Below are positions 248 to 56,078 of a stretch of DNA of 64,000 nt, in pieces (the stretch's first letter is position 1; each line of letters starts with the position of its first letter). The translations under genes were made by a program, and so were the position numbers. The stretch lies in sequence record LR756511.1; one strand, 5' to 3'. The notes beneath the pieces are model-generated. The model ran no database searches and had not been told where the DNA came from. It worked only from the letters and a program-made list of their open reading frames with translations.

Positions 248-446
248 TTAGGACTTCCTCTCGCATTTCGTACAGCTCATCCTCACAGCGGATTCTGTTT
301 AGCCTATTACAGACCCTTTGAACCTTGGCCGAATCTCTAGAGATTACATTATCTCGATAGAGATTCGGCCAAGACTCTATGTAATCCACCAACGGATACC
401 ATTGTCCGCGAGCGGATCGCCACCATAGCTTATACAACTTTATCAT
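237..446 (-). CDS. hypothetical protein
   Basis: 69 aa ORF overlapping the PARP stop (ATGA-type coupling). Confidence 0.5.
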   Translation of the reverse strand: MIKLYKLWWRSARGQWYPLVDYIESWPNLYRDNVISRDSAKVQRVCNRLNRIRCEDELYEMREEVLNEV

Positions 447-2032
447 GTGTCAAATTCGCAAAGGTAGCGAAGCTGATTTTGCCTACCATCGTAAATAATC
501 CATTCATTATTCACGACGCCAGATCGTCCAGCCTTACCGAACACGCAATGGTGTCCCTTTGGAGGCGAAGCATAACCGCCAGAAGAAGGAGCTACATAAG
601 GGCTTCCAAGGACCACATCGCAAGCAAACATGAAGGCGGCACGACCACGCACGTTGCCATCACCAGACGACCAATAAGAGCCGCGAAGTGACGTATAACC
701 AGCAGATTTCCGCCAATCGTCAGCGAAGTAGCAGCCTGGACCGAACATCGCACCAGTAATTACAACGCCGACTAGTTGCTTGGGTAGTCGCAAACCTTCT
801 CTTAAAATACCACGGACATTAACAGAACGGGTGCCGTGGAATAGGAGAGCGGTATTTGTGCTGTGATAACGCTTTAAGAGAGTGTTGTCATCCAAGTCAT
901 TTCTTTCTGTCGGCTGGTAGGGCGGTCGTTCCGTAATGCGGGGCTTCTCATCAATAATACCGCCCTGAGTCTTTTCAACCTTTTCCTGATCGCCGTTACG
1001 GGCAACCTTCCACATATTCTTGATCTTCATGTTGCCAACGCCCGCATGACGATTGGCACTGGCCTTCGGCCACCAATTATAGAGGAATTTTCCAAGAGCC
1101 GTGCTAGGATCAATCCATTCCATCTTAAGTGGCATTCCATCAAACGGATCGCTTGCATCTGTATCCGAATCCGTCGTAACATATAGAGCAGATTCGAATG
1201 CGTCAAGGTCCGCAAGCCAAGCGAGAATGTTATCCTTATTTAAAAGCCAATCCTTCGGCGGGCAATGTAGAGCCTTCTTTTTGGGAATGCGGCTATACAT
1301 GACGCGAGTAAGCTGATTAAGCTCATTGTCAGCAACTTGATCGTCAACATTATCGCCAACCTTAATGAGCCGCTTCTGCGCTTCCACAAGAATATCGCGG
1401 GCTTCATTAATTGACTTTTGAGTTGGAAGGCAAGCGTCGGCCATTGACCCGCGAGTATAAGAAACCGTAGCCACGTTTAAATCTTTCATTAAACGCAGCG
1501 TATTGGTGTCAATGGTAATGGAAGGCTTTTTAGCGCCATTGCCATTCATGACTGCTGGCTTTGCCGTAGTCTTTGCGCCTTCGTTAAGCTTAATCGTCTT
1601 CGCGTCAGGAAGACCCGTTGAGCGAGTTGCCATAGGACGCACTAAATAGCAGTCCTTATTTGGCTTGGCTTGAAGCGTGCGAATGCCCGCTACAGTCGTC
1701 CATTGCCCACGCTTATCATTCTTTTCGTGAAGTTGCTTGGCGAATTCATACTGAGCATCGGATTCGCTGCTGCATTCAACAAATTGGAATTGAGGTGAAG
1801 AGGCACCTGTGCGACCCCACTCAAAATAAGCATACCACTTCTTAGTCTTGCGGTTTTGGACTACCGCACCGTGATAATACTTGTTACTATCCTTGCCTGA
1901 CTGATCGAAGCAGCCAAGGTCGGCAATCTTACAGTTTTCGAATTGACCATCTTCTGTTGCTGGCGGTCCAAAACACTGAAAATCTTCGGGAGTAGAACTG
2001 CCAGGAAAAGTGCTTTTGTCAAGTTTAGCCAT
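443..2032 (-). CDS. poly(ADP-ribose) polymerase-like protein (WGR + helical regulatory + ART catalytic domains)
   Basis: WGR motif (YFEWGRTG), helical region, catalytic LLFHGT / MFGPGCYFA / NEWIIYD with an intact H-Y-E triad. Confidence 0.9.
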   Translation of the reverse strand: MAKLDKSTFPGSSTPEDFQCFGPPATEDGQFENCKIADLGCFDQSGKDSNKYYHGAVVQNRKTKKWYAYFEWGRTGASSPQFQFVECSSESDAQYEFAKQLHEKNDKRGQWTTVAGIRTLQAKPNKDCYLVRPMATRSTGLPDAKTIKLNEGAKTTAKPAVMNGNGAKKPSITIDTNTLRLMKDLNVATVSYTRGSMADACLPTQKSINEARDILVEAQKRLIKVGDNVDDQVADNELNQLTRVMYSRIPKKKALHCPPKDWLLNKDNILAWLADLDAFESALYVTTDSDTDASDPFDGMPLKMEWIDPSTALGKFLYNWWPKASANRHAGVGNMKIKNMWKVARNGDQEKVEKTQGGIIDEKPRITERPPYQPTERNDLDDNTLLKRYHSTNTALLFHGTRSVNVRGILREGLRLPKQLVGVVITGAMFGPGCYFADDWRKSAGYTSLRGSYWSSGDGNVRGRAAFMFACDVVLGSPYVAPSSGGYASPPKGHHCVFGKAGRSGVVNNEWIIYDGRQNQLRYLCEFDT

Positions 2033-12917: not shown

Positions 12918-13750
12918 TGTAACCTCGCTGCTTCAACAGTATTATACATAAGCATACTTACGGTAACTGGACCTACGCCACCAGGAACAGGCGTAATATA
13001 CTTAACCTTTTCCTTAACAAACGGATGCACGTCACCTACAATCTTTCCTTCTACATCATTAATTCCAACATCAATAATAACATGCTGTTCTGTTGTCATA
13101 TCAGCCGTAAGGAAATTAGGAATACCTACTGCAACTACAATTATGTCAGAATGTAGACACAATTCTTTTAATTGGGCCGCTGGTGTCTGATCGTGGCAGA
13201 CAGTAACCGTAGAATTAGCATATTCCGCATCGTCTTGAATTAACATAGACGATAAAGGCTTGCCTACAATGATACTTCTGTTGATTACAACGACATGCTT
13301 TCCAGGCAATGTAGTTACGTATTTAATCAGCCTGCGAACAGCATGAGGTGTGGGTGGCAGGAATCTTGCGCGATTTTGTACTAATAGACCAACATTTACT
13401 GGATTCAGCACATCCACATCTTTCAGTGGGTCTATTAGATCAAAGATGAGAGTGGCGTTATAATCTTTTGGCAGGGGTAACTGAACTAGTATTCCATTAC
13501 ACTCTTTAAGCTGATTCAGTTGACATATCGTGTCTACAGTTTCCGCTTCGGAGCGGGGACGGTGTAAGACAGATTTGATGCCCAATTCCTCGCATAACTT
13601 TTGCTTGTTTCTAACATACACTTCGCTTCGTGGATCATTGCCTACCAGTAACACGTCTAGTCGTGGGTCACACTTGATTTCCGAAAGCTTTTTCGCAATT
13701 TCATAATTTGACGCACAAGCAATAATCTTACCACTAATTATTTCCGCCAT
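12911..13750 (-). CDS. folD: bifunctional methylenetetrahydrofolate dehydrogenase/cyclohydrolase
   Basis: YVRNKQK, GILVQLPLP, KDVD, PPTPHAV, RSIIVGKP, DVGIN, TPVPGGVGP. Confidence 0.95.
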   Translation of the reverse strand: MAEIISGKIIACASNYEIAKKLSEIKCDPRLDVLLVGNDPRSEVYVRNKQKLCEELGIKSVLHRPRSEAETVDTICQLNQLKECNGILVQLPLPKDYNATLIFDLIDPLKDVDVLNPVNVGLLVQNRARFLPPTPHAVRRLIKYVTTLPGKHVVVINRSIIVGKPLSSMLIQDDAEYANSTVTVCHDQTPAAQLKELCLHSDIIVVAVGIPNFLTADMTTEQHVIIDVGINDVEGKIVGDVHPFVKEKVKYITPVPGGVGPVTVSMLMYNTVEAARLQC

Positions 13751-14235
13751 TAATCCTCCCACGCCACATGGCTAATTTCATCGAATCCTTCTTCCAACGT
13801 GGGTTCAGCATACACTTTATCATGTGCTTTTGCAACATTCGCCCAATATTCGTAGGTGTGCCCACGATTGTCACTATTGTAACGTCGCATAGCATGAGTT
13901 CCTGGTGTATCCTTATGGAAAACAACCGCCTTGCATGGTACGTCAAAACTTTTGGCGAGAGCGATCCATCGCTGTCGGCCTTTGGCACTTACATTAAGGC
14001 CACGATCTACTAATACGGTTCGCCCCATACAAAGACCTAGACTTACAATACTGTTTTCCAAAGACTTATACAGTATTTTCAATTTCTCGTCGTAGAGCGT
14101 GTAAAGGTCAGCATGTAATAAATTGACGATTGCATCATCGTTCATTATTAATGCGCCAGATTTAGCCGCTTTGCGGCAGTAGGTTGATTTGCCACTGGCA
14201 ATCATACCAACAAGAACATGAATTTCAGGTTTCAT
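13750..14235 (-). CDS. AAA_33 / polynucleotide-kinase-like P-loop kinase
   Basis: LVGMIASGKST, NDD, VLVD..N....R. Confidence 0.8.
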   Translation of the reverse strand: MKPEIHVLVGMIASGKSTYCRKAAKSGALIMNDDAIVNLLHADLYTLYDEKLKILYKSLENSIVSLGLCMGRTVLVDRGLNVSAKGRQRWIALAKSFDVPCKAVVFHKDTPGTHAMRRYNSDNRGHTYEYWANVAKAHDKVYAEPTLEEGFDEISHVAWED

Positions 14236-14569: not shown

Positions 14570-15013
14570 TTATTCGTATTTAAGGTCAGTTATAGCAAGG
14601 TCGGCATCATGCTTGTAAGCAATGCCAGCAATCGGTCTTGCGGTCTTAATTACCGTCTCTGCTTGCAAATGAGTTAATCCTAAAGCTCGCAAGATCGCAT
14701 ATGCAGTAGATGGCCCACGATTAACGCCAGCCGCACAATGAGCATATACCTTGTTGGTAGGCTGCATTAATCCAGCAAGTGCAAATTCAATTGATTTCTT
14801 AAACCACGATGTAGGCTTTGGTTGACCGTCATCGTTTACCCCATTAAACAAGTAAGTGATTTGTGGATAGTTCTTTAATAATGGGGCGTCATCGAATTCC
14901 GCCCTACAGTCGATAATATGTGTAACGCCAGCATCAATTAACTTCTTAACATCCGCGTCTGTGAATATTCCAGCACCAGTTGCAACCCTATTGGTTACGA
15001 AATTGAAATCCAT
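14570..15013 (-). CDS. dual-specificity protein phosphatase
   Basis: HCAAGVNRGPS CX5R loop; start MDFNFV lies downstream of a terminator and a TACATA box. Confidence 0.9.
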   Translation of the reverse strand: MDFNFVTNRVATGAGIFTDADVKKLIDAGVTHIIDCRAEFDDAPLLKNYPQITYLFNGVNDDGQPKPTSWFKKSIEFALAGLMQPTNKVYAHCAAGVNRGPSTAYAILRALGLTHLQAETVIKTARPIAGIAYKHDADLAITDLKYE

Positions 15014-15036
15014 GCAATATGTATGCATATCAAAAC

Positions 15037-15066
15037 AAAAAGACGCGCCGTTAAGCGCGTCTTTTT
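15037..15066 (-). terminator. intrinsic terminator after the ParB-like gene
   Basis: aaaaagacgcgc-cgttaa-gcgcgtcttttt. Confidence 0.8.
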
Positions 15067-15093
15067 GCCACATCAACTTTAACCCACCAAGGG

Positions 15094-16370: not shown

Positions 16371-17006
16371 CTAGAAGTGATAATTATTGTGAGGACGGCG
16401 ACAACGAATGAGCCAAGAAACTTCATATTCCTTTTGGCCAAAGTTGTCAATCACAGAATTTTTCTTCCTTAAAACTAAGCCTTCTACTTCGTCACCATAG
16501 TCTTTAACAAACTCGTCCTTGAAATTTGTATAAAAGGTTGGAGCCATTAAAAGATTGTCAGAGATTTGATAACCCATCCCACGCCAAGGATCAAGCTTCG
16601 TTGGTCGCCCACAAATATCCTCTAGTATCTTAAGACGTTCAACTTGGTTATACTTTAGGAACAGGTATTCCTTATAATGGAGAACGTCGAAAAGCACAAT
16701 TTTGCCTTTCGTGTCTTCCGCCGTCGTCTTCATCAGGAGTTCACCATCTAACCAAATTTCCACCCCTTGTGGCAAGCCTGGAAGTGCCAGAATTTCATTT
16801 TGGATCGCAAGTGGCATTGAATAATTGAGATGCGCTCTACCGTGACGGCTGAAAATTTCAACCCGCCTTTCAGGAGAGACGTGGATCACACTACGGGAGC
16901 CATTGTATTTTGGCTGAGCGCAAAACACCCCAAGCGAATCGTAGTGTTCAAGATCATTTGGCGGCACAGCGCCCTTCGGACGTGGTGGATAGATAGGAGT
17001 AGTCAT
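16371..17006 (-). CDS. ATP-dependent ligase adenylation domain only (RNA/DNA ligase or capping-type nucleotidyltransferase)
   Basis: motif I QPKYNG, III WLDGEL, IIIa VLFDVL, IV EGLVLR; no OB domain. Confidence 0.75.
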   Translation of the reverse strand: MTTPIYPPRPKGAVPPNDLEHYDSLGVFCAQPKYNGSRSVIHVSPERRVEIFSRHGRAHLNYSMPLAIQNEILALPGLPQGVEIWLDGELLMKTTAEDTKGKIVLFDVLHYKEYLFLKYNQVERLKILEDICGRPTKLDPWRGMGYQISDNLLMAPTFYTNFKDEFVKDYGDEVEGLVLRKKNSVIDNFGQKEYEVSWLIRCRRPHNNYHF

Positions 17007-23116: not shown

Positions 23117-23325
23117 CGCTGTGCCTCCGCTTCAGAGTTGTAATATCCTGTGTATTCGCCCGTTTGTGGGTTCCAAGCAGAGATTCGCCAGCAACCATCG
23201 TTATGTAAGTAACGAAAGGTATCTGACGAATCTCCCTTGATTACGTAAAACTTCCCAAAATGTTCCACATATGGGTTGCTTTGACAATATATTTTCGGCC
23301 TTCTATCAAGCCAATAATTCCTCAT
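23086..23325 (-). CDS. hypothetical protein
   Basis: 79 aa coupled ORF. Confidence 0.5.
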   Translation of the reverse strand: MRNYWLDRRPKIYCQSNPYVEHFGKFYVIKGDSSDTFRYLHNDGCWRISAWNPQTGEYTGYYNSEAEAQRQIDIWASNP

Positions 23326-24263
23326 ACGCCTGCTTTATTAATAAGGGTTCTTACCTCTTGTAAGACTTCCTTATATTTATCTGGCAGGACCACACAATTT
23401 TCCATTGAGGAATAATGACATTCCATACATTCGGTTAAAATCTTCTTGATTTTAGCCTTCTGCGGCTTTTCTGGCAAGTCGCTCTTAACACGCATAGCTT
23501 CCAATTGTCTCTCTTTGTCTGACACCCATGCTTTAACTTCCTGTTCTTTCATGTCGCCACGACGAATTGCCTTCAGTTGCTCATTATTCTTCCTTAAATC
23601 GAGCGTTCCAGTCGTTAGAATTTGTTCACATTCATTAAGAAGGCGAACTAAATTATAACCGAACTTAACATCGAAGCCAAATTCGTCACGAAGTTTCTTA
23701 CGCTTACTTCCTTCTGCTGGATTTTTCGTGTCCATTTTGTGAACTTGGCTGTAGGCGTAGTTCTTGAACGTGTCAAAGCAACCCTTGTGAAGAAAAACCT
23801 CCCTGTTGCTTCGAACAATATTTGCAACCTGTGTTGCGTGCAAGACGCATTCTTGCGAAGTAAACAGGCTGTCAATAAAGTTTGGGTTGTTCGTATACAA
23901 CAAATGAAAGAACTTGATGATATTAAAGACAGAGAAATCATATTCTCTACCTTTTCCCTTTAACGCACTTGCATCAACGATTCCATGCTGAATCCATTGT
24001 GCAAATGGATGAAAAGTATCATCAAATGCAAACGATGCTGCCGTCTGATCCTTATTTGGGGGAATAGTGTATAATCCCTGCAAATGAGGAAAAGCGCGTT
24101 CCTTTGGCGGGATAGCGAAGCCGTAGATGTCCATGTCGCTAGAATCGCTACTGACACCATAAGAGAAACTGCCCATGATCGTAAGATAATGGGTGTTCGT
24201 GAGGAGCCATTCTTCCTCCTCAATCCTAATCAGCTTTTTTTCATATAGTTCTTGGAGAATCAT
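23322..24263 (-). CDS. DNA polymerase beta-superfamily nucleotidyltransferase (YcgL/Nuc-transf type)
   Basis: GSFSYGVSSDSSDMDIYG, KFFHLLYTNNPNFIDSL, KFGYNLVRLL. Confidence 0.85.
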   Translation of the reverse strand: MILQELYEKKLIRIEEEEWLLTNTHYLTIMGSFSYGVSSDSSDMDIYGFAIPPKERAFPHLQGLYTIPPNKDQTAASFAFDDTFHPFAQWIQHGIVDASALKGKGREYDFSVFNIIKFFHLLYTNNPNFIDSLFTSQECVLHATQVANIVRSNREVFLHKGCFDTFKNYAYSQVHKMDTKNPAEGSKRKKLRDEFGFDVKFGYNLVRLLNECEQILTTGTLDLRKNNEQLKAIRRGDMKEQEVKAWVSDKERQLEAMRVKSDLPEKPQKAKIKKILTECMECHYSSMENCVVLPDKYKEVLQEVRTLINKAGV

Positions 24264-24265
24264 AC

Positions 24266-24832
24266 TCACTCCCACTTATGGTAATTGGTGTAATACGCAT
24301 ACCCACCATGAAGTCTGTTGTTAGTCAAAAATACTTCCAGCGACGGATACCGTTCTTTCATTATCTGTGGCGTTAAATCTGGTTGTAGATGAATTTCACT
24401 TTCTACAGTCCATTTCTTACCTTGCCATTCAAACGATGCTCCCTGCGGATGTAAGTATGGTACAGCTGCAAGACACTTGATCTTCTTTGAGCTTATATCA
24501 GAAATCAAGCTCACAGCGTCCGCAACTGCCAAATGTTCTAGGACATCGCCAAGGATGATGTAGTCGTATTGATTGTAGTTAAACTTCAATATATCGCAAC
24601 AGTGAACTTTCTTATAGACTTCATGAAGTTTGTATTCGTCAATGTAAGGCTGATGGATTTCTAAGCCTTCAACGTTTAAATCTTTTAAGGCTCTGCCATA
24701 GCCGCCGTCGCCAGCACCAACATCCAAGATGAAACAATCGGCTCTCGCAAATGGAAGGCTGCACATCTTCGAAACTATAAATCTAATGTGTTCGTAAATC
24801 GCGTCTTTAAACATTGGTGTGCTTGTTGGCAT
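24266..24832 (-). CDS. class I SAM-dependent methyltransferase
   Basis: ILDVGAGDG, GDVLEHL. Confidence 0.75.
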   Translation of the reverse strand: MPTSTPMFKDAIYEHIRFIVSKMCSLPFARADCFILDVGAGDGGYGRALKDLNVEGLEIHQPYIDEYKLHEVYKKVHCCDILKFNYNQYDYIILGDVLEHLAVADAVSLISDISSKKIKCLAAVPYLHPQGASFEWQGKKWTVESEIHLQPDLTPQIMKERYPSLEVFLTNNRLHGGYAYYTNYHKWE

Positions 24833-33208: not shown

Positions 33209-33586
33209 TTAGTAAAGCTTCAACTCTTTTGTGATCTTATCAATGTGTTCCGCATCATGTGGGCCAATAGCAAGACACGTTTTTGTGGGAACCCCATTAA
33301 ATTCTGTCTTACCACTATCCACAACCATATGAACCGTTAAACCCGCATCCCTGGCACGTTTGTAGACATCTACTAATGCCTCTTCACTGTCAACCTGTAA
33401 TGTGACTTTCGTGAAAGTCCCATGAATCCATTCCCGTTCTTCTGGACTAAGGAAAACAGTCCCATTGAAGAACTTCTGCACACGCTCCGATAGCCACATC
33501 ATCGAAGCATGACTACCCTGTGCTATCTCTTTACCCCTCCGCATCTTCAGGTCACGGCGTATCACTATCACTTGCTTTACGCTCAT
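33209..33586 (-). CDS. pth2: peptidyl-tRNA hydrolase type 2 (PTH2)
   Basis: KQVIVIRRDLKM..GK..AQ.SHA, KVTL, DSGKTEF.G.PT.TCLAIGP. Confidence 0.95.
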   Translation of the reverse strand: MSVKQVIVIRRDLKMRRGKEIAQGSHASMMWLSERVQKFFNGTVFLSPEEREWIHGTFTKVTLQVDSEEALVDVYKRARDAGLTVHMVVDSGKTEFNGVPTKTCLAIGPHDAEHIDKITKELKLY

Positions 33587-34337: not shown

Positions 34338-34430
34338 TGGGCCGTGAGGGTTTCGAACCCCCGACTAAGGGATTATGAATCGCGGGTTGATAAACCCGTG
34401 TCCCCTGCTCTACCACTGAGCTAACGGCCC
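34338..34430 (-). tRNA. tRNA-Ile2 (CAU) with a 21-nt insertion in the anticodon loop
   Basis: GGGCCGT/ACGGCCC acceptor, GCTC/GAGC D stem, GGGGA/TCCCT anticodon stem, TTCGAAA T loop; removing 34379..34399 restores the loop CTCATAA. Confidence 0.85.
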
Positions 34431-34447: not shown

Positions 34448-34690
34448 CTAGAGTTGCTTATAGACCCATTCGCCAGCTTTGCCCCAAATTGGACTATCCA
34501 ACTCGTCATTGGATGTGTGCAACTGAGGATAAATACGGCGACAGAGCAGTAGTTGGATTCTCTTCTCAGGGGATATTGGCTCTGTCCACTTCGGAACAGA
34601 TGTTGCTGCCTTTGCCTTCTTGGGAAGAAGGAAAGGAATAACAAGCACTCCAATAATTCTCTTAAGCCAACCGCGTCTTGTAAACATCAT
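34448..34690 (-). CDS. twin-arginine leader micro-protein with a capsid-like RRIYPQL motif
   Basis: TRRGWLK + hydrophobic stretch + AKA; KRIQLLLCRRIYPQL. Confidence 0.55.
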   Translation of the reverse strand: MMFTRRGWLKRIIGVLVIPFLLPKKAKAATSVPKWTEPISPEKRIQLLLCRRIYPQLHTSNDELDSPIWGKAGEWVYKQL

Positions 34691-35463
34691 GCGGCCCTCT
34701 TGAGTTCCTTAAAGATTTCCACCAGCGACCGTTGATCGGATTGCGCCGCTATAATTGGCTTAGTAACACTGTGCGTAATTGCGTATTTCCTGAATTGCTG
34801 TTCATTATTCAGGATCATCAAATAACGCATAATCAAACTATCTGTTGGCGGGAAGTCGCCTTGTAATACTACACACAATCTTTCAGTCATCCTGCCACGA
34901 TCATAGACTTTAGTTATACCGTGACCTGGGAATATTTGGTAAACTAAACCAGTCTTCCCTCTCACTGTCACATGACCGCGACGAATGAAATCCTTGAACT
35001 TATCATCGCCCAAAACCCTTCGTAACGTTTCTCTTGCTCGCATTTCCCGTGGGTCAGTCGTAAAGCCCAGCGGATTACATGACGAAAGAACGTTGGGCGC
35101 AACACGTTTGTCCAAAATCTCGCGGAGTTTTTCGGCAGCGGTTTTGGGCACTGAAACATCATAACCGCCAGTGGTTGTGATGTAATTAACCGCAGCATAA
35201 CCGTCGTAGACTCTAACCTGGACTGGTCCTTGAATATAATTGGTGTACGTATCTGAACAACTTGTTGCGGCAATTAAATTAACTCTATATTCGACATTTC
35301 TAAGTGTGGTTACATTATCGTTATATTGAATCCACGACGTATCAACCGCATTATTATATGTGACGGCAGACGTGGTGCCAGTAGTAAGCCACGTAAAATT
35401 ATTCGTGGCATACGTTCCTGCCGTCATTGTGCCAGTATTGCCGTAAAATGTTGCTAGCGCCAT
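34687..35463 (-). CDS. hypothetical protein; Thr/Tyr-rich N-terminus, C-terminal Cys-containing domain (possible E2-like)
   Basis: RLCVVLQGDFPPTDSLIMRYLMIL; coupled to a GG-ending protein. Confidence 0.55.
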   Translation of the reverse strand: MALATFYGNTGTMTAGTYATNNFTWLTTGTTSAVTYNNAVDTSWIQYNDNVTTLRNVEYRVNLIAATSCSDTYTNYIQGPVQVRVYDGYAAVNYITTTGGYDVSVPKTAAEKLREILDKRVAPNVLSSCNPLGFTTDPREMRARETLRRVLGDDKFKDFIRRGHVTVRGKTGLVYQIFPGHGITKVYDRGRMTERLCVVLQGDFPPTDSLIMRYLMILNNEQQFRKYAITHSVTKPIIAAQSDQRSLVEIFKELKRAA

Positions 35464-40409: not shown

Positions 40410-40673
40410 TCATACTTTATAGTAGTACTTAGGGGTTATAACGTCTTGGTCGGCTACGGTTTCCCAGCCTGTCAAACCTTTAATTATAACGCCCAATGTT
40501 GGATGAATTCCTCGATACCACCGACGTACTCGCTTAAATGAGCCTTTTTGAAAAATTACTTTTTCGTCCAAAAGCTCTAGTTCGGTATTGCCCGCCACAA
40601 TCCGCCTTGTAAATAAAAGTAAGTCACTTATATCTACAACGGCACGCTCAGGATTTTCTTGAAGTAACATCAT
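40410..40673 (-). CDS. hypothetical protein
   Basis: coupled ORF. Confidence 0.5.
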   Translation of the reverse strand: MMLLQENPERAVVDISDLLLFTRRIVAGNTELELLDEKVIFQKGSFKRVRRWYRGIHPTLGVIIKGLTGWETVADQDVITPKYYYKV

Positions 40674-40676
40674 AAA

Positions 40677-41405
40677 TCACGGAGTTTTAAATATTTCCTT
40701 CACTGTTACACACGTTTCCAGATAAGTGTCTATGCTTTCACCAGCATCACCCCAATATCCATCAAGCTTGTGCGCCTTTAAATTTCCAGCTTTTAAGTAA
40801 ATATTATTTAAGTCCGTAACCTCTAACTCATTCCTTCTCGATGGCTTTAAATCCTTCAACTTCTTCCAAACTTCCTTATCATACATGTACAACCCTATTG
40901 CAATCCAATTAGATTTAGGATTCTTTGGTTTTTCTATGATTTCCGTTACTTTATCACCATCCATATTCACAACGCCATACCATTCTGGTCGTTGGTTCTG
41001 AGTCACAAATATTCTAGCCCCTTCTGGATTATTGTTAAAATCCTCTACTACTTCATGAAAGGGTTTCTGTAGAATGTTATCGCCCAACATTACACAAATA
41101 TTATCTCCATCCGTCCAATCTTCCGCAAGAGCTAAAGCATGAGCAATTCCGCCCGCCTCTTTTTGATAAGTGTAAGCTATATGCTTTAACCCAAACTCCT
41201 CTCCATTTCCTAATATTCTTAAGAAATCACCAACATTTTGACCACCACAAACTATAAGAATATCTGTAATGCCACTATTAACCATACTTTGAATTGGATA
41301 ATAGATCATCGGCTTATTATATACGGGAAGCAAGTGCTTGTTAACCACATTGGTCAAAGGTCTGAGCCTTGTTCCCATTCCACCAGCTAAAATTACCCCT
41401 CGCAA
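40677..41405 (-). CDS. sugar-1-phosphate nucleotidylyltransferase (RmlA/RfbA-like)
   Basis: GVILAGGMGTRLRPLT..NKHLLPVY.KPMIYYP, LGDN, EKP, RNELEVTD. Confidence 0.92.
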   Translation of the reverse strand: MRGVILAGGMGTRLRPLTNVVNKHLLPVYNKPMIYYPIQSMVNSGITDILIVCGGQNVGDFLRILGNGEEFGLKHIAYTYQKEAGGIAHALALAEDWTDGDNICVMLGDNILQKPFHEVVEDFNNNPEGARIFVTQNQRPEWYGVVNMDGDKVTEIIEKPKNPKSNWIAIGLYMYDKEVWKKLKDLKPSRRNELEVTDLNNIYLKAGNLKAHKLDGYWGDAGESIDTYLETCVTVKEIFKTP

Positions 41406-48700: not shown

Positions 48701-48720
48701 TTTATTGAATTTTGAGAAAG

Positions 48721-48802
48721 AGCCGCAGGAGGGAATCGAACCCACAATGTCTTTCGACGCAGGTTTACAAAACCTGTCCCTTACCATTCGGGGCACTGCG
48801 GC
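48721..48802 (-). tRNA. tRNA-Thr (UGU) with a long (class II-like) variable arm
   Basis: GCCGCAG/CTGCGGC, CAGGT-TTTGTAA-ACCTG, variable region CGTC-GAAA-GACATT, GTGGG-TTCGATT-CCCTC. Confidence 0.85.
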
Positions 48803-55804: not shown

Positions 55805-55807
55805 TAA

Positions 55808-55880
55808 TAGGCGGTTAGGGAATCGAACCCCATTATTGCTGGCATATAAGACCAGTCCCGCGCCATGCGAGTCACCGCCC
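55808..55880 (-). tRNA. tRNA-Ile (UAU)
   Basis: GGGCGGT/ACCGCCT, CTCG/CGGG D stem, CTGGT-CTTATAT-GCCAG, TGGGG-TTCGATT-CCCTA. Confidence 0.8.
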
Positions 55881-56078
55881 AACTAACTGCTTACACCTTT
55901 CACACAATTCCATCTCTTTCCAACGCACATCGACTGCTCTACCATATTTAGCAGCTTCATTTACGAAATCACATGCCCGTTTCTTGGCTTCCTCTTCCGT
56001 CAAATTCTCGTCAGCCATCTTCCAAGAATTATCAACGCTGAAGCAGACGCTATATTCCCAATACCATTTCATCTTCAA
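55872..56078 (-). CDS. hypothetical protein
   Basis: 68 aa ORF. Confidence 0.45.
   Translation of the reverse strand: MKMKWYWEYSVCFSVDNSWKMADENLTEEEAKKRACDFVNEAAKYGRAVDVRWKEMELCERCKQLVGR

Follow-up and report, generated by a model that had tools for sequence, protein, structure and literature searches.

A tRNA gene of a 595-kb uncultured huge phage of bacteria (LR756511.1) carries a 21-nt hairpin inside its anticodon loop, and related phages carry diverged versions of the same insert in an otherwise perfectly kept tRNA, so the insert is most likely an intron cut out by unknown enzymes. The window analyzed here is a stretch of 64,000 nt of this record, and coordinates refer to it unless stated otherwise. 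The minus strand of window 34338-34430 reads GGGCCGTTAGCTCAGTGGTAGAGCAGGGGAC[ACGGGTTTATCAACCCGCGAT]TCATAATCCCTTAGTCGGGGGTTCGAAACCCTCACGGCCCA, with the insert lying between C32 and U33, and its removal restores the loop CUCAUAA of a CAU, tRNA-Ile2-like tRNA. The observation made in the sequence-only reading, namely that an otherwise regular tRNA-Ile2(CAU) is interrupted by a 21-nt hairpin between C32 and U33, was confirmed. The gene is composed of the following parts.

34338-34430, minus strand: interrupted tRNA(CAU), tRNA-Ile2-like gene (93 nt; 72 nt after excision, 75 nt with CCA)
34400-34430, minus strand: 5' exon with the acceptor 5' strand, D arm, anticodon-stem 5' strand and C32
34379-34399, minus strand: 21-nt intervening sequence ACGGGTTTATCAACCCGCGAT, consisting of 1 nt, a 16-nt stem-hexaloop and a 4-nt tail
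34383-34398, minus strand: intron stem-loop CGGGT-TTATCA-ACCCG
34388-34393, minus strand: conserved hexaloop TTATCA (consensus YTAWCA)
34338-34378, minus strand: 3' exon with U33, anticodon CAU (34375-34377), A37, A38, anticodon-stem 3' strand, variable loop, T arm, acceptor 3' strand and discriminator A

The Rfam tRNA model scored 54.4 bits against a 29-bit threshold. ARAGORN with introns allowed, a search that had been proposed in advance as a check, called tRNA(CAU) with a 21-nt intron after position 31-32 of the sequence, which is C32|U33 (output i(32,21)). The default ARAGORN call, Pro(CGG) of 94 nt, is an artifact of forcing an anticodon into the insert: the homologous inserts would give unrelated anticodons, whereas CAU is restored in all of them. 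Bacterial-mode tRNA finders miss or mislabel these genes. RNAfold gave the cloverleaf plus the hairpin described in the sequence-only reading (C32-G, an A.C mismatch, CGGGUU/AACCCG and loop UAUC), with an MFE of -41.6 kcal/mol and z = -3.9, and 0 of 200 shuffles folded as well. The placement of the insert is unique because sliding it by one base changes C32. The spliced form would read GAGCAGGGGACTCATAATCCCTTAGTCGGGGG, with the junction GGGGAC|UCAUAAUCCCUUAG, and its TTAGT variable loop differs from those of all relatives fetched here, while the unspliced form reads GGGGACACGGGTTTATC.

Could the insert be an assembly error, a repeat copy or a chance arrangement? A Logan assembly of ERR3663028 contains the identical tRNA and insert with a SNP just upstream, so an independent assembly carries the same structure. 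The 21-mer is unique in the 595-kb genome, with no copy within 5 mismatches, and the stem plus YTAWCA motif is not enriched (9 occurrences against 7.8 +/- 2.7). The restored arm GAGCAGGGGACTCATAATCCC occurs uninterrupted in at least 119 IMG/VR contigs. BLAST of the locus, the tRNA and the neighboring protein against GenBank phages found only the record itself, and mycobacteriophage hits to the 3' half are ordinary tRNA-like or att sequence. An IMG/VR pattern search with a gap of 0-30 was swamped by uninterrupted tRNAs, and one with a gap of 4-34 gave a single chance hit that is not a tRNA. Relatives were fetched through a conserved upstream neighbor, and a second conserved syntenic neighbor served as a synteny anchor.

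34687-35463, minus strand: conserved 258-aa protein of unknown function upstream of the tRNA, the anchor used to fetch relatives (475 homologues, many on contigs of 0.35-0.62 Mb)
33209-33586, minus strand: peptidyl-tRNA hydrolase PTH2 downstream of the tRNA (Pfam PF01981, E = 5.8e-31), used as a synteny anchor

PTH2 is the same neighbor in L134, L136, L137, L332, L335, L370 and L374 (L numbers denote the contigs and loci compared here). The syntenic tRNA is interrupted by homologous 20-23-nt inserts in five distinct clade members (the window, also fetched as L133; L218, on a contig of 373 kb and identical to L238; L136; L134, identical to L138; and L152) and uninterrupted in eight. One uninterrupted allele, L372, is 100% identical to L136 with its 21 nt removed, which speaks against a chance arrangement. 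This empty site fixes the boundaries of the homologous insert of L136 at 35/36, whereas the 32/33 boundaries in the window itself rest on the unique restoration of C32 and CUCAUAA. Three other viral-contig tRNAs (L233, L231 and L355, identical to L368) are split at 34/35 (two) or 35/36 (one). In all eight interrupted tRNAs, the halves add up to CTCATAA. The same intron (ACGGG...CGAT) lies at 32/33 in the window but at 35/36 in L218 and yields the same mature loop, which fits an enzyme that reads the intron.

Another question was whether the insert and its host gene are conserved, since absence of the insert from relatives or lack of its conservation, together with detection of only unspliced, uncharged RNA, had been named beforehand as evidence against an intron. 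Seven interrupted tRNAs keep all 147 of 147 cloverleaf pair cells after excision, 10 pairs show compensatory change, and 0 of 500 shuffles reached this. Type-A exons are 93-96% identical and introns 67-81%, while the 60-nt flanks are about 50% identical, which is background, and flanking proteins are only about 55% identical. All seven loop bases are 100% conserved, while intron bases outside the hairpin core drift. The intron stem also covaries: in five sequences, 80% of cells pair against 50.6% in shuffles, the covariation score is 0.64 against 0.15 in shuffles, and the pair closing the hexaloop shows four Watson-Crick types (UA/GC/AU/CG). In the alignment, T8, A9, C11 and A12 are invariant, and the hexaloop starts exactly 6 nt after the 5' junction in all five clade introns. 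However, only five clade sequences in two subtypes support this ruler-like regularity, so shared ancestry could explain it, and one intron (L152) folds only weakly. Pairing of the hexaloop with the UCAUAA of the tRNA itself was rejected, as it is incompatible with the 35/36 introns, which split that sequence.

The loop CUCAUAA agrees with a tRNA-Ile2 (lysidine tRNA), although Ile2 versus elongator Met identity is not settled. The best full-length E. coli matches are genes that PGAP calls tRNA-Ile, tied with tRNA-Lys at 80.8%, and none of the six records listed of 5,537 is tRNA-Met; the acceptor pairs C4-G69 and C5-G68, which are E. coli TilS determinants, are present in the window and in most, but not all, homologues, and no isotype-specific model was applied, so these observations do not decide between the two identities. 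AUA makes up 20% of Ile codons in this phage, so an AUA decoder is useful. Whether TilS is at hand is likewise left undecided, as tblastn of the E. coli protein detected none in the phage, but TilS is nearly universal in bacteria and the enzyme of the host, which is unknown, would be used.

To search for the enzymes, we applied Pfam and PHROGs to the ORFs around the tRNA and to 60 ORFs of the window, which revealed a ligase, a kinase, a phosphatase, RlaP and an HNH protein, but no RNA endonuclease. The four candidate RNA-repair components are as follows.

13750-14235, minus strand: P-loop kinase (AAA_33; PF13671, E = 1.1e-11), candidate 5'-OH polynucleotide kinase of an RNA heal-and-seal cassette, role inferred
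14570-15076, minus strand: dual-specificity-phosphatase-fold protein (PF00782, E = 5.1e-08, 33.2 bits, just under the curated cut-off of 33.5), candidate end-healing phosphatase, role inferred
16371-17006, minus strand: small ATP-dependent ligase nucleotidyltransferase domain (DNA_ligase_A_M, E = 2.4e-09; RNA_ligase, E = 3.3e-05, 24.5 bits, under its curated cut-off of 27; PHROG 114), candidate sealing enzyme, role inferred
23322-24275, minus strand: RlaP, the RNA-repair-pathway Pol-beta nucleotidyltransferase (PF10127, E = 5.4e-15; PHROG 388, E = 2.3e-39), whose role in jumbo-phage RNA repair is discussed in PMC7824862

The ligase domain has no PDB sequence relative and its substrate is unknown. 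tblastn of E. coli RtcB and RtcA against all 595 kb gave no hit at E <= 1; since a host RtcB is possible and an ATP-dependent ligase domain, a kinase and a phosphatase are present, this does not decide which type of ligase would join the halves. In a comparison of neighboring genes between intron carriers and non-carriers, the single carrier-only cluster was a 212-aa protein without a significant Pfam, PHROG or PDB match, and no endonuclease candidate specific to carriers emerged. The ORFs next to the interrupted tRNA in an unrelated contig gave only an IS607-type TnpB and a resolvase. A promoter/terminator scan gave nothing informative.

Taken together, these data make it possible to suggest, with moderate confidence, that the gene is a functional, phage-encoded tRNA with anticodon CAU, of the tRNA-Ile2 type, interrupted by a member of a small family of 20-23-nt hairpin introns spliced by proteins. 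In this view, the pre-tRNA folds as a normal cloverleaf with an extra stem-loop in the anticodon loop, which in this phage stacks on the anticodon stem. An endonuclease would recognize the stem and hexaloop (YUAWCA) of the intron rather than a bulge-helix-bulge (BHB) motif or the position in the tRNA, and would cut 1 nt before the 16-nt stem-loop and 4 nt (6 nt in the second subtype) after it. The halves would be healed and sealed by an RNA repair-type kinase, phosphatase and ligase set such as the one in this window, or by a host ligase, giving the loop CUCAUAA, and C34 would then be modified by the host's TilS. The insert, its hairpin and homologues, the exact presence/absence alleles, strong purifying selection on the exons and the lack of BHB or ribozyme features were demonstrated by the analysis, whereas excision itself, for which there is no RNA evidence, the enzymes involved and the end chemistry are inferred. 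Other tRNAs of the same genome also carry inserts.

The interpretation given in the sequence-only reading was partly supported. Its CAU/Ile2-like assignment, the hairpin at 32/33 and the absence of a clean BHB held, and its suggestion of a short phage intron needing an endonuclease plus ligase is the one favored by the comparative data, while its alternative of an inactivated gene is disfavored. Its idea of a shield against anticodon nucleases or TilS, which was not tested, explains why the insert might exist, not how it is handled. Its background statement, that bacterial tRNA introns are self-splicing group I/II introns of hundreds of nucleotides while short protein-spliced ones are archaeal or eukaryal, omits that introns in megaphage tRNAs were already reported as enigmatic (Devoto et al. 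2019, PMC6784885).

A rival possibility, which we consider unlikely, is that the RNA is never spliced and is used as a tRNA-like RNA, for example as a decoy or inhibitor for a host anticodon nuclease, TilS or a synthetase, or as a regulator, with the hairpin as part of the working molecule. Non-decoding tRNA-like RNAs do exist in this phage, as the same genome has tRNA-like genes with no anticodon at all. It encodes a tRNA-like gene whose anticodon arm is an 8-bp stem with a GAAA tetraloop (L006, 40615-40689), IMG/VR holds many phage tRNA-like genes with a long hairpin in place of the anticodon loop, and no splicing enzyme was identified. However, the loop is split at three different places in different phages and the halves always sum exactly to CUCAUAA; a decoy that mimics a loop should not tolerate both UCAUAA kept whole and CUCA/UAA separated by a hairpin.

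Still less probable is an archaeal-type intron removed by a phage- or host-encoded EndA-family endonuclease acting on a relaxed bulge-helix-bulge or bulge-helix-loop motif, with RtcB-type ligation. The size and the non-canonical position match archaeal introns, archaeal 19-34-nt introns at the same place turned up in our genome scan, and relocation within the loop recalls the intron transposition described in Thermoproteales (PMC4090602). Against this, a strict script search for the BHB (a 4-bp helix flanked by two 3-nt bulges) recovered the motif with the correct product in two positive controls, L356 (36-nt intron, 73-nt product) and L245 (21-nt intron, 77-nt product), but none giving a 72-74-nt product in the eight phage tRNAs: nothing in the window, L218, L233 or L355, and only wrong-length products in L136, L134, L152 and L231. 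Inspection by hand found no BHB either, and relaxing the search to one mismatch gave only inconsistent registers. The Pfam scans of 60 window ORFs found no EndA/Sen-family protein, although no EndA query or whole-genome profile scan was made. The phage has bacterial hallmarks (a sigma-70 region 4 protein, ClpX and T4-type morphogenesis genes), and a scan of 185,579 species genomes found no bacterial tRNA with such an insert.

Decay of a redundant tRNA by a palindromic insertion, with a tRNA(UAU) candidate at window 55807-55881 now reading AUA, is strongly disfavored: although eight of thirteen syntenic alleles lack the insert, the perfect cloverleaf pairing with compensatory changes, the exon identity and the covariation of the hairpin itself speak against it, and the sequence divergence of the interrupted alleles contradicts very recent, independent insertions. 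RNA-catalyzed excision, by the insert itself or in trans by a group I ribozyme such as the one possibly present in the tRNA-Leu(UAA) of this phage (a 700-nt insert with an HNH ORF), is the least likely, even though bacterial and phage tRNA introns known so far are group I introns in the anticodon loop (PMC4090602, PMC3984707), because 20-23 nt cannot hold a catalytic core, the only Rfam match over the insert is the tRNA model, the base before the 5' junction is C32 (window, L134, L152) or A35 (L218, L136) rather than the U of group I 5' splice sites, the last intron bases are T, T, G, T, G, and the 700-nt insert itself got no Rfam group I hit.

A bolder, tentative possibility that these data leave standing is that bacteriophages possess a tRNA-splicing pathway of their own, unrelated to the archaeal/eukaryal BHB-EndA system and to ribozymes, in which a nuclease reads the 16-nt stem-hexaloop inside the intron and cuts at fixed distances on both sides, and phage RNA-repair enzymes reseal the loop. 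Because recognition would lie in the intron, the mini-intron could sit at, and move between, different positions of the loop (32/33 and 35/36 in this family). Textbook knowledge holds that bacterial and phage tRNA introns are self-splicing ribozymes and that short protein-spliced ones belong to archaea and eukaryotes, and megaphage tRNA introns have been an unexplained footnote since 2019. The present family is the most tractable case seen in this analysis, being only about 21 nt long, with a defined conserved stem-hexaloop, exact empty-site alleles, two positions in one loop and an RNA repair cassette nearby. It makes directly testable the question of who cuts and rejoins these tRNAs and why a lysidine-dependent tRNA is the target, and an answer could reveal a new RNA endonuclease-ligase pathway and a new layer of phage control over decoding.

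The closest precedent is provided by the "enigmatic" introns in tRNAs of Lak megaphages and of a 595,573-bp JGI phage (Devoto et al. 2019, PMC6784885; repeated in PMC8346664 and PMC13037316). There, too, otherwise canonical tRNA genes of huge phages of bacteria are interrupted, the inserts are conserved among related phages, alleles with and without the insert exist, and no known splicing mechanism applies. However, Lak introns are 79-141 nt long, are predicted at 37/38, carry tRNA-like internal sequence and sit in Tyr, Phe, Thr and Gly tRNAs, whereas the present family comprises 20-23-nt single stems with a conserved hexaloop at 32/33 or 35/36 of a CAU tRNA; the published sequences share neither length, position, host tRNA nor motif with it. 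The published tables do not list this family, the literature searched contained no description of it or of any mechanism, and the published work gives no structural or covariation analysis and no BHB test.

Archaeal (and eukaryal) protein-spliced introns are similarly short (11-129 nt, archaeal median 12-25 nt), lie in or near the anticodon loop, including the non-canonical 32/33 position, are patchily distributed with the same intron found at different positions, and are presumably cut and rejoined by proteins (PMC4090602), but here the defining BHB motif is absent, the carrier is a virus of bacteria, and no EndA or RtcB was identified. Group I introns in bacterial and phage tRNAs (tRNA-Leu UAA, tRNA-fMet, tRNA-Arg CCU and Azoarcus tRNA-Ile CAU; PMC13168695 for the latter) share the location in the anticodon loop of a bacterial-type tRNA and the patchy presence among relatives, while the present insert is about ten times shorter, without a catalytic core (P3-P9, roughly 200 nt or more), a U at -1, a conserved terminal G or an Rfam match. 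Finally, phage T4 anticodon-loop repair (PrrC cut, then Pnkp healing and Rnl1 sealing) and jumbo-phage RNA repair sets with RlaP also employ a phage-encoded kinase/phosphatase and ligase that rejoin a tRNA broken in its anticodon loop, and this window has a comparable set, although its link to this tRNA is only inferred; such repair restores a single host-inflicted nick, whereas here two programmed cuts and removal of 21 nt would be needed.

The window corresponds to bases 186001-250000 of LR756511.1, an unannotated 595,163-bp "uncultured phage" genome. On its minus strand, 34430 to 34338 reads GGGCCGTTAGCTCAGTGGTAGAGCAGGGGAC-ACGGGTTTATCAACCCGCGAT-TCATAATCCCTTAGTCGGGGGTTCGAAACCCTCACGGCCCA. The Rfam tRNA model scores this segment at 54.4 bits against a gathering score of 29. 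An intron-permitting ARAGORN search, a check that had been proposed from the sequence alone, calls tRNA(CAU) with a 21-nt intron between C32 and U33, while the default ARAGORN call, a 94-nt tRNA-Pro(CGG), comes from forcing an anticodon into the insert. RNAfold returns the cloverleaf plus a hairpin stacked on the anticodon stem (C32-G, an A.C mismatch, CGGGUU/AACCCG and loop UAUC) with an MFE of -41.6 kcal/mol and z = -3.9, and 0 of 200 shuffles fold as well. Thus, the observation made in the sequence-only reading is confirmed: its coordinates, sequence and fold, and its statement that exact removal restores CUCAUAA, are all correct. The placement of the insert is unique, because shifting it by one base changes C32, and the restored arm GAGCAGGGGACTCATAATCCC occurs uninterrupted in at least 119 IMG/VR contigs. 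The 21-mer occurs nowhere else in the genome. A Logan assembly of ERR3663028 carries the identical tRNA and insert with a SNP 10 nt upstream, so the insert is not an assembly artefact.

The carrier has the hallmarks of a phage of bacteria, namely a sigma-70 region 4 protein, ClpX and a T4-type prohead protease, with faint or weak precomputed Pfam hits to T4 gp13 in the fetched loci. The window also encodes, at 443-2032 (minus strand), a phage protein combining a WGR domain with a poly(ADP-ribose) polymerase catalytic domain (Pfam E = 4.5e-09 and 2.8e-19). The GC content of the genome is 42%, and ARAGORN finds 65 tRNA genes in three clusters. AUA makes up 12.9 per 1000 codons, or 20% of Ile codons. 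The other two CAU tRNAs look like an elongator and an initiator-like species with an A1.A72 mismatch, and the interrupted gene is therefore the only Ile2-like one. Its best full-length E. coli matches are genes that PGAP names tRNA-Ile, tied with tRNA-Lys at 80.8%; Ile2 identity is likely but not proven. A possible second AUA decoder is the tRNA(UAU) candidate at window 55807-55881 (minus strand), which is called by ARAGORN but does not reach the Rfam tRNA gathering score. The tRNA-Thr(UGU) of 83 nt at window 48720-48802 (minus strand) has a long variable arm (GTC-GAAA-GAC stem-loop), which is unusual for a class I tRNA, and a tRNA at locus L004 29588-29661 (minus strand) has the anticodon CUA, an amber suppressor type; TAG is the rarest stop among long ORFs (49 of 288).

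Conservation of the insert in related phages had been singled out beforehand as a point on which the reading could fail. The 258-aa protein encoded upstream of the tRNA has 475 homologues, many on contigs of 0.35-0.62 Mb, and the gene order from this protein through the tRNA to PTH2 is conserved. The syntenic CAU tRNA is interrupted in five distinct phages.

Inserts in the syntenic CAU tRNA of five distinct phages (locus; insert; length; position)
window / L133; ACGGGTTTATCAACCCGCGAT; 21 nt; after C32
L218 = L238 (373-kb IMG/VR contig); ACGGGGCTATCACCCACGAT; 20 nt; after A35
L136; ATGGGACTATCATCCCACAAG; 21 nt; after A35
L134 = L138; GCACGCTTAACAGCGATGTGCTT; 23 nt; after C32
L152; GTTCGCTTATCAGCAAAATGAAG; 23 nt; after C32

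The tRNA is uninterrupted in eight further loci (L137, L139, L219, L332, L335, L370, L372 and L374). L372 is base-for-base identical to L136 with its 21 nt removed and is thus an exact empty-site allele. Pattern scans of IMG/VR added interrupted CAU tRNAs from unrelated contigs: L233 (28 nt after C34), L231 (35 nt after C34), L355 = L368 (37 nt after A35) and L356 (IMGVR_UViG_3300000361_000090, 20 kb), which has a 36-nt intron at 37/38 with a perfect bulge-helix-bulge (BHB) and probably comes from an archaeal virus. In every case, the two loop pieces add up to CTCATAA. A different kind of anomaly was seen at L232 7422-7488 (IMG/VR, 332-kb contig), where a tandem duplication of the D-stem 3' strand plus anticodon arm offers two alternative anticodon loops, CUA and UUA. 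A scan of one genome from each of 185,579 bacterial and archaeal species with a pattern for such interrupted tRNAs returned archaeal introns plus bacterial false positives or small duplications, but no bacterial tRNA with a hairpin insert.

These data raise the question of whether the interrupted gene is still alive. To address it, we spliced the seven non-BHB interrupted tRNAs in silico and counted cloverleaf pairs. Of 147 cells, 147 form standard pairs, 10 of 21 pairs show changes on both sides, G27.U43 is invariant, and 0 of 500 shuffles and no slid register come near this. Among the three type-A genes, exons are 93-96% identical and introns 67-81%, while the 60 nt on either side are about 50% identical, which is the background of the aligner; the neighbouring protein is only about 55% identical. 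The exons have therefore been under strong purifying selection as a tRNA for the whole time the intron has been diverging, which rules out a pseudogene for practical purposes.

Anchored at the 5' junction, all five clade introns align without gaps for 17 nt, with the following layout.

Position 1: a purine
Positions 2-6: pair with positions 13-17
Positions 7-12: the hexaloop YTAWCA, with T8, A9, C11 and A12 invariant
Tail: 4 nt (CGAT, CGAT, CAAG) in type A and 6 nt in type B

Covariation of the insert, likewise suggested in advance as a criterion, was examined in the stem, which is 80% paired against 50.6% in shuffles, with a covariation score of 0.64 against 0.15; the loop-closing pair is U-A, G-C, A-U, C-G, C-G. 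With five sequences, this is supportive rather than conclusive. The hexaloops UAUCA and UAACA (window 34388-34393, minus strand, and homologues) are exactly complementary to U33-A37 of the tRNA-Ile(GAU) and tRNA-Asn(GUU) anticodon loops and present a codon-like AUC or AAC, although this may be coincidence. In two IMG/VR contigs (L344 13587-13683 and L363 413-508), tRNA-Ile(UAU) genes have a long variable arm whose 7-nt loop reads CTGATAA or CAGATAA; this looks like a second, GAU-type anticodon loop and is complementary to the intron hexaloop UUAUCA.

In the window and in L134, the hairpin stacks on the anticodon stem through C32, leaving the anticodon in an 8-9-nt bulge on the 3' side, while in L218 and L136 it stands in the middle of the loop. 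The most telling comparison is that of the window with L218: the same intron (ACGGG...CGAT, 81% identical) lies before UCA in one and after UCA in the other, and the mature product is the same. Whatever removes it would have to read the intron rather than a fixed position in the tRNA. How the intron moved by 3 nt is unexplained, and re-insertion or gene conversion seems more likely than two compensating indels.

Can the insert be assigned to a known class of intron? A script requiring a 4-bp helix, two 3-nt bulges on opposite strands and outer helices of at least 2 bp (motif definition after PMC4090602) recovers the correct intron in L356, which served as a positive control, and in a Bathyarchaeia tRNA. 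In the eight phage tRNAs, it finds nothing that yields a tRNA-length product, and allowing one mismatch gives only mutually inconsistent registers. A ribozyme cannot be held in 21 nt, and no Rfam family matches the insert; the base before the junction is C or A, not U, and the last intron base is not a conserved G. The same genome does contain a tRNA-Leu(UAA) interrupted in the anticodon by a 700-nt insert with an HNH-type ORF (L009 9169-9955, minus strand = LR756511.1 409169-409955), the classical site of the cyanobacterial group I intron, but no Rfam group I match reached the gathering score. A dispersed repeat was also rejected: no other copy lies in the genome within 5 mismatches, and the stem plus YTAWCA motif is not enriched, with 9 occurrences against 7.8 +/- 2.7. 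The hairpin GTGGTTTATCAACCAC, followed by TTTT, at window about 46455 (minus strand) shares the 12-nt core GGTTTATCAACC with the intron hairpin, but given the palindrome constraint this is probably chance.

The best-supported reading is a protein-dependent cut-and-rejoin. For the sealing half, plausible actors are encoded in the same window, all on the minus strand.

13750-14235: AAA_33 P-loop kinase
14570-15076: dual-specificity-phosphatase-fold protein
16371-17006: small ATP-dependent ligase nucleotidyltransferase
23322-24275: RlaP

This is the kind of set that jumbo phages are thought to use to repair anticodon-loop breaks (PMC7824862). The cutting half is unknown: nothing near the tRNA has a recognisable nuclease domain, no neighbouring gene tracks with intron presence, and E. 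coli RtcB, RtcA and TilS have no detectable homologue in the phage. Near the interrupted CAU tRNA of the unrelated 93-kb viral contig L355, an IS607-type pair, a TnpB (OrfB_IS605 / Cas12f-like TNB) and a serine resolvase, lies about 2 kb away (L355 9246-11071, minus strand). The insert, its homologues and the selection on the exons are shown by the sequence comparisons, whereas the whole of this mechanism is inference; no RNA data were examined. We hold with high confidence that this is a real, conserved intervening sequence in a functional phage tRNA gene, and with moderate confidence that it is removed by protein-catalysed cleavage and ligation; that the pathway is a phage-specific one reading the intron hairpin is only a tentative suggestion. 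The interpretation in the sequence-only reading was partly supported: of the possibilities it listed a short intron needing an endonuclease plus ligase is favoured and an inactivated gene is not. As to why a CAU/Ile2 tRNA is the repeated target, ideas include gating of lysidine formation or of MetRS and IleRS recognition, evasion of an anticodon nuclease, or protection of the gene's DNA against a homing nuclease, none of which was examined here. The case is surprising from the standpoint of tRNA and phage biology and makes a question open since 2019 experimentally approachable.

Among the alternatives, an unspliced tRNA-like decoy deserves some weight because of other odd tRNAs in the same genome. 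At L006, another stretch of LR756511.1, a tRNA-like gene at 40615-40689 (minus strand; Rfam 47.7 bits) has an anticodon arm formed by an 8-bp stem closed by a GAAA tetraloop and so has no anticodon at all. A second interrupted tRNA (L006 38201-38302, minus strand = LR756511.1 288201-288302) has a 30-nt hairpin insert in the anticodon loop (GCGGA TT[AACCTAGT...ACTAGGC]TCTAA TTCGT); its anticodon is ambiguous, with UCU most plausible, and it is found by Rfam (29.6 bits) but not by ARAGORN. Two tRNA-like genes of 126-128 nt (L006 41311-41437 and L006 39133-39258, both minus strand) share an internal module, ACTTGGA-hairpin-...AGCATACAAACA; for the former, the Rfam alignment places a 55-nt insert in the D-loop, while the latter got no Rfam match. 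In IMG/VR contigs L338, L339, L345, L348, L351, L353, L362, L364 and L366, GC-rich phage tRNA-like genes start GGGCC..TAGCTCA and have normal D and T arms, with a long hairpin in place of, or inside, the anticodon loop; L339, L348, L351 and L353 form one conserved family. However, a decoy does not explain why loop halves split at three different places always sum to CUCAUAA. The EndA/BHB splicing, pseudogene and ribozyme readings each fail a direct test, as described.

None of the papers found or read describes this short hairpin family in the CAU tRNA, its conserved hexaloop, its two positions in one loop, the exact empty site, the explicit failure of the BHB test or any mechanism. The broader phenomenon is nevertheless on record, although unexplained, and in this respect the background given in the sequence-only reading was incomplete. 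Devoto et al. 2019 (PMC6784885) reported that Lak megaphage tRNAs contain "enigmatic", highly conserved introns, and later papers repeat this. The Lak introns are 79-141 nt long, are predicted at 37/38 and lie in Tyr, Phe, Thr and Gly tRNAs. In the supplement, the same authors report that a 595,573-bp JGI phage has at least four tRNAs with possible introns, including 23-nt and 52-nt ones, and list in that phage a D-loop insert similar to the one at L006 41311-41437.
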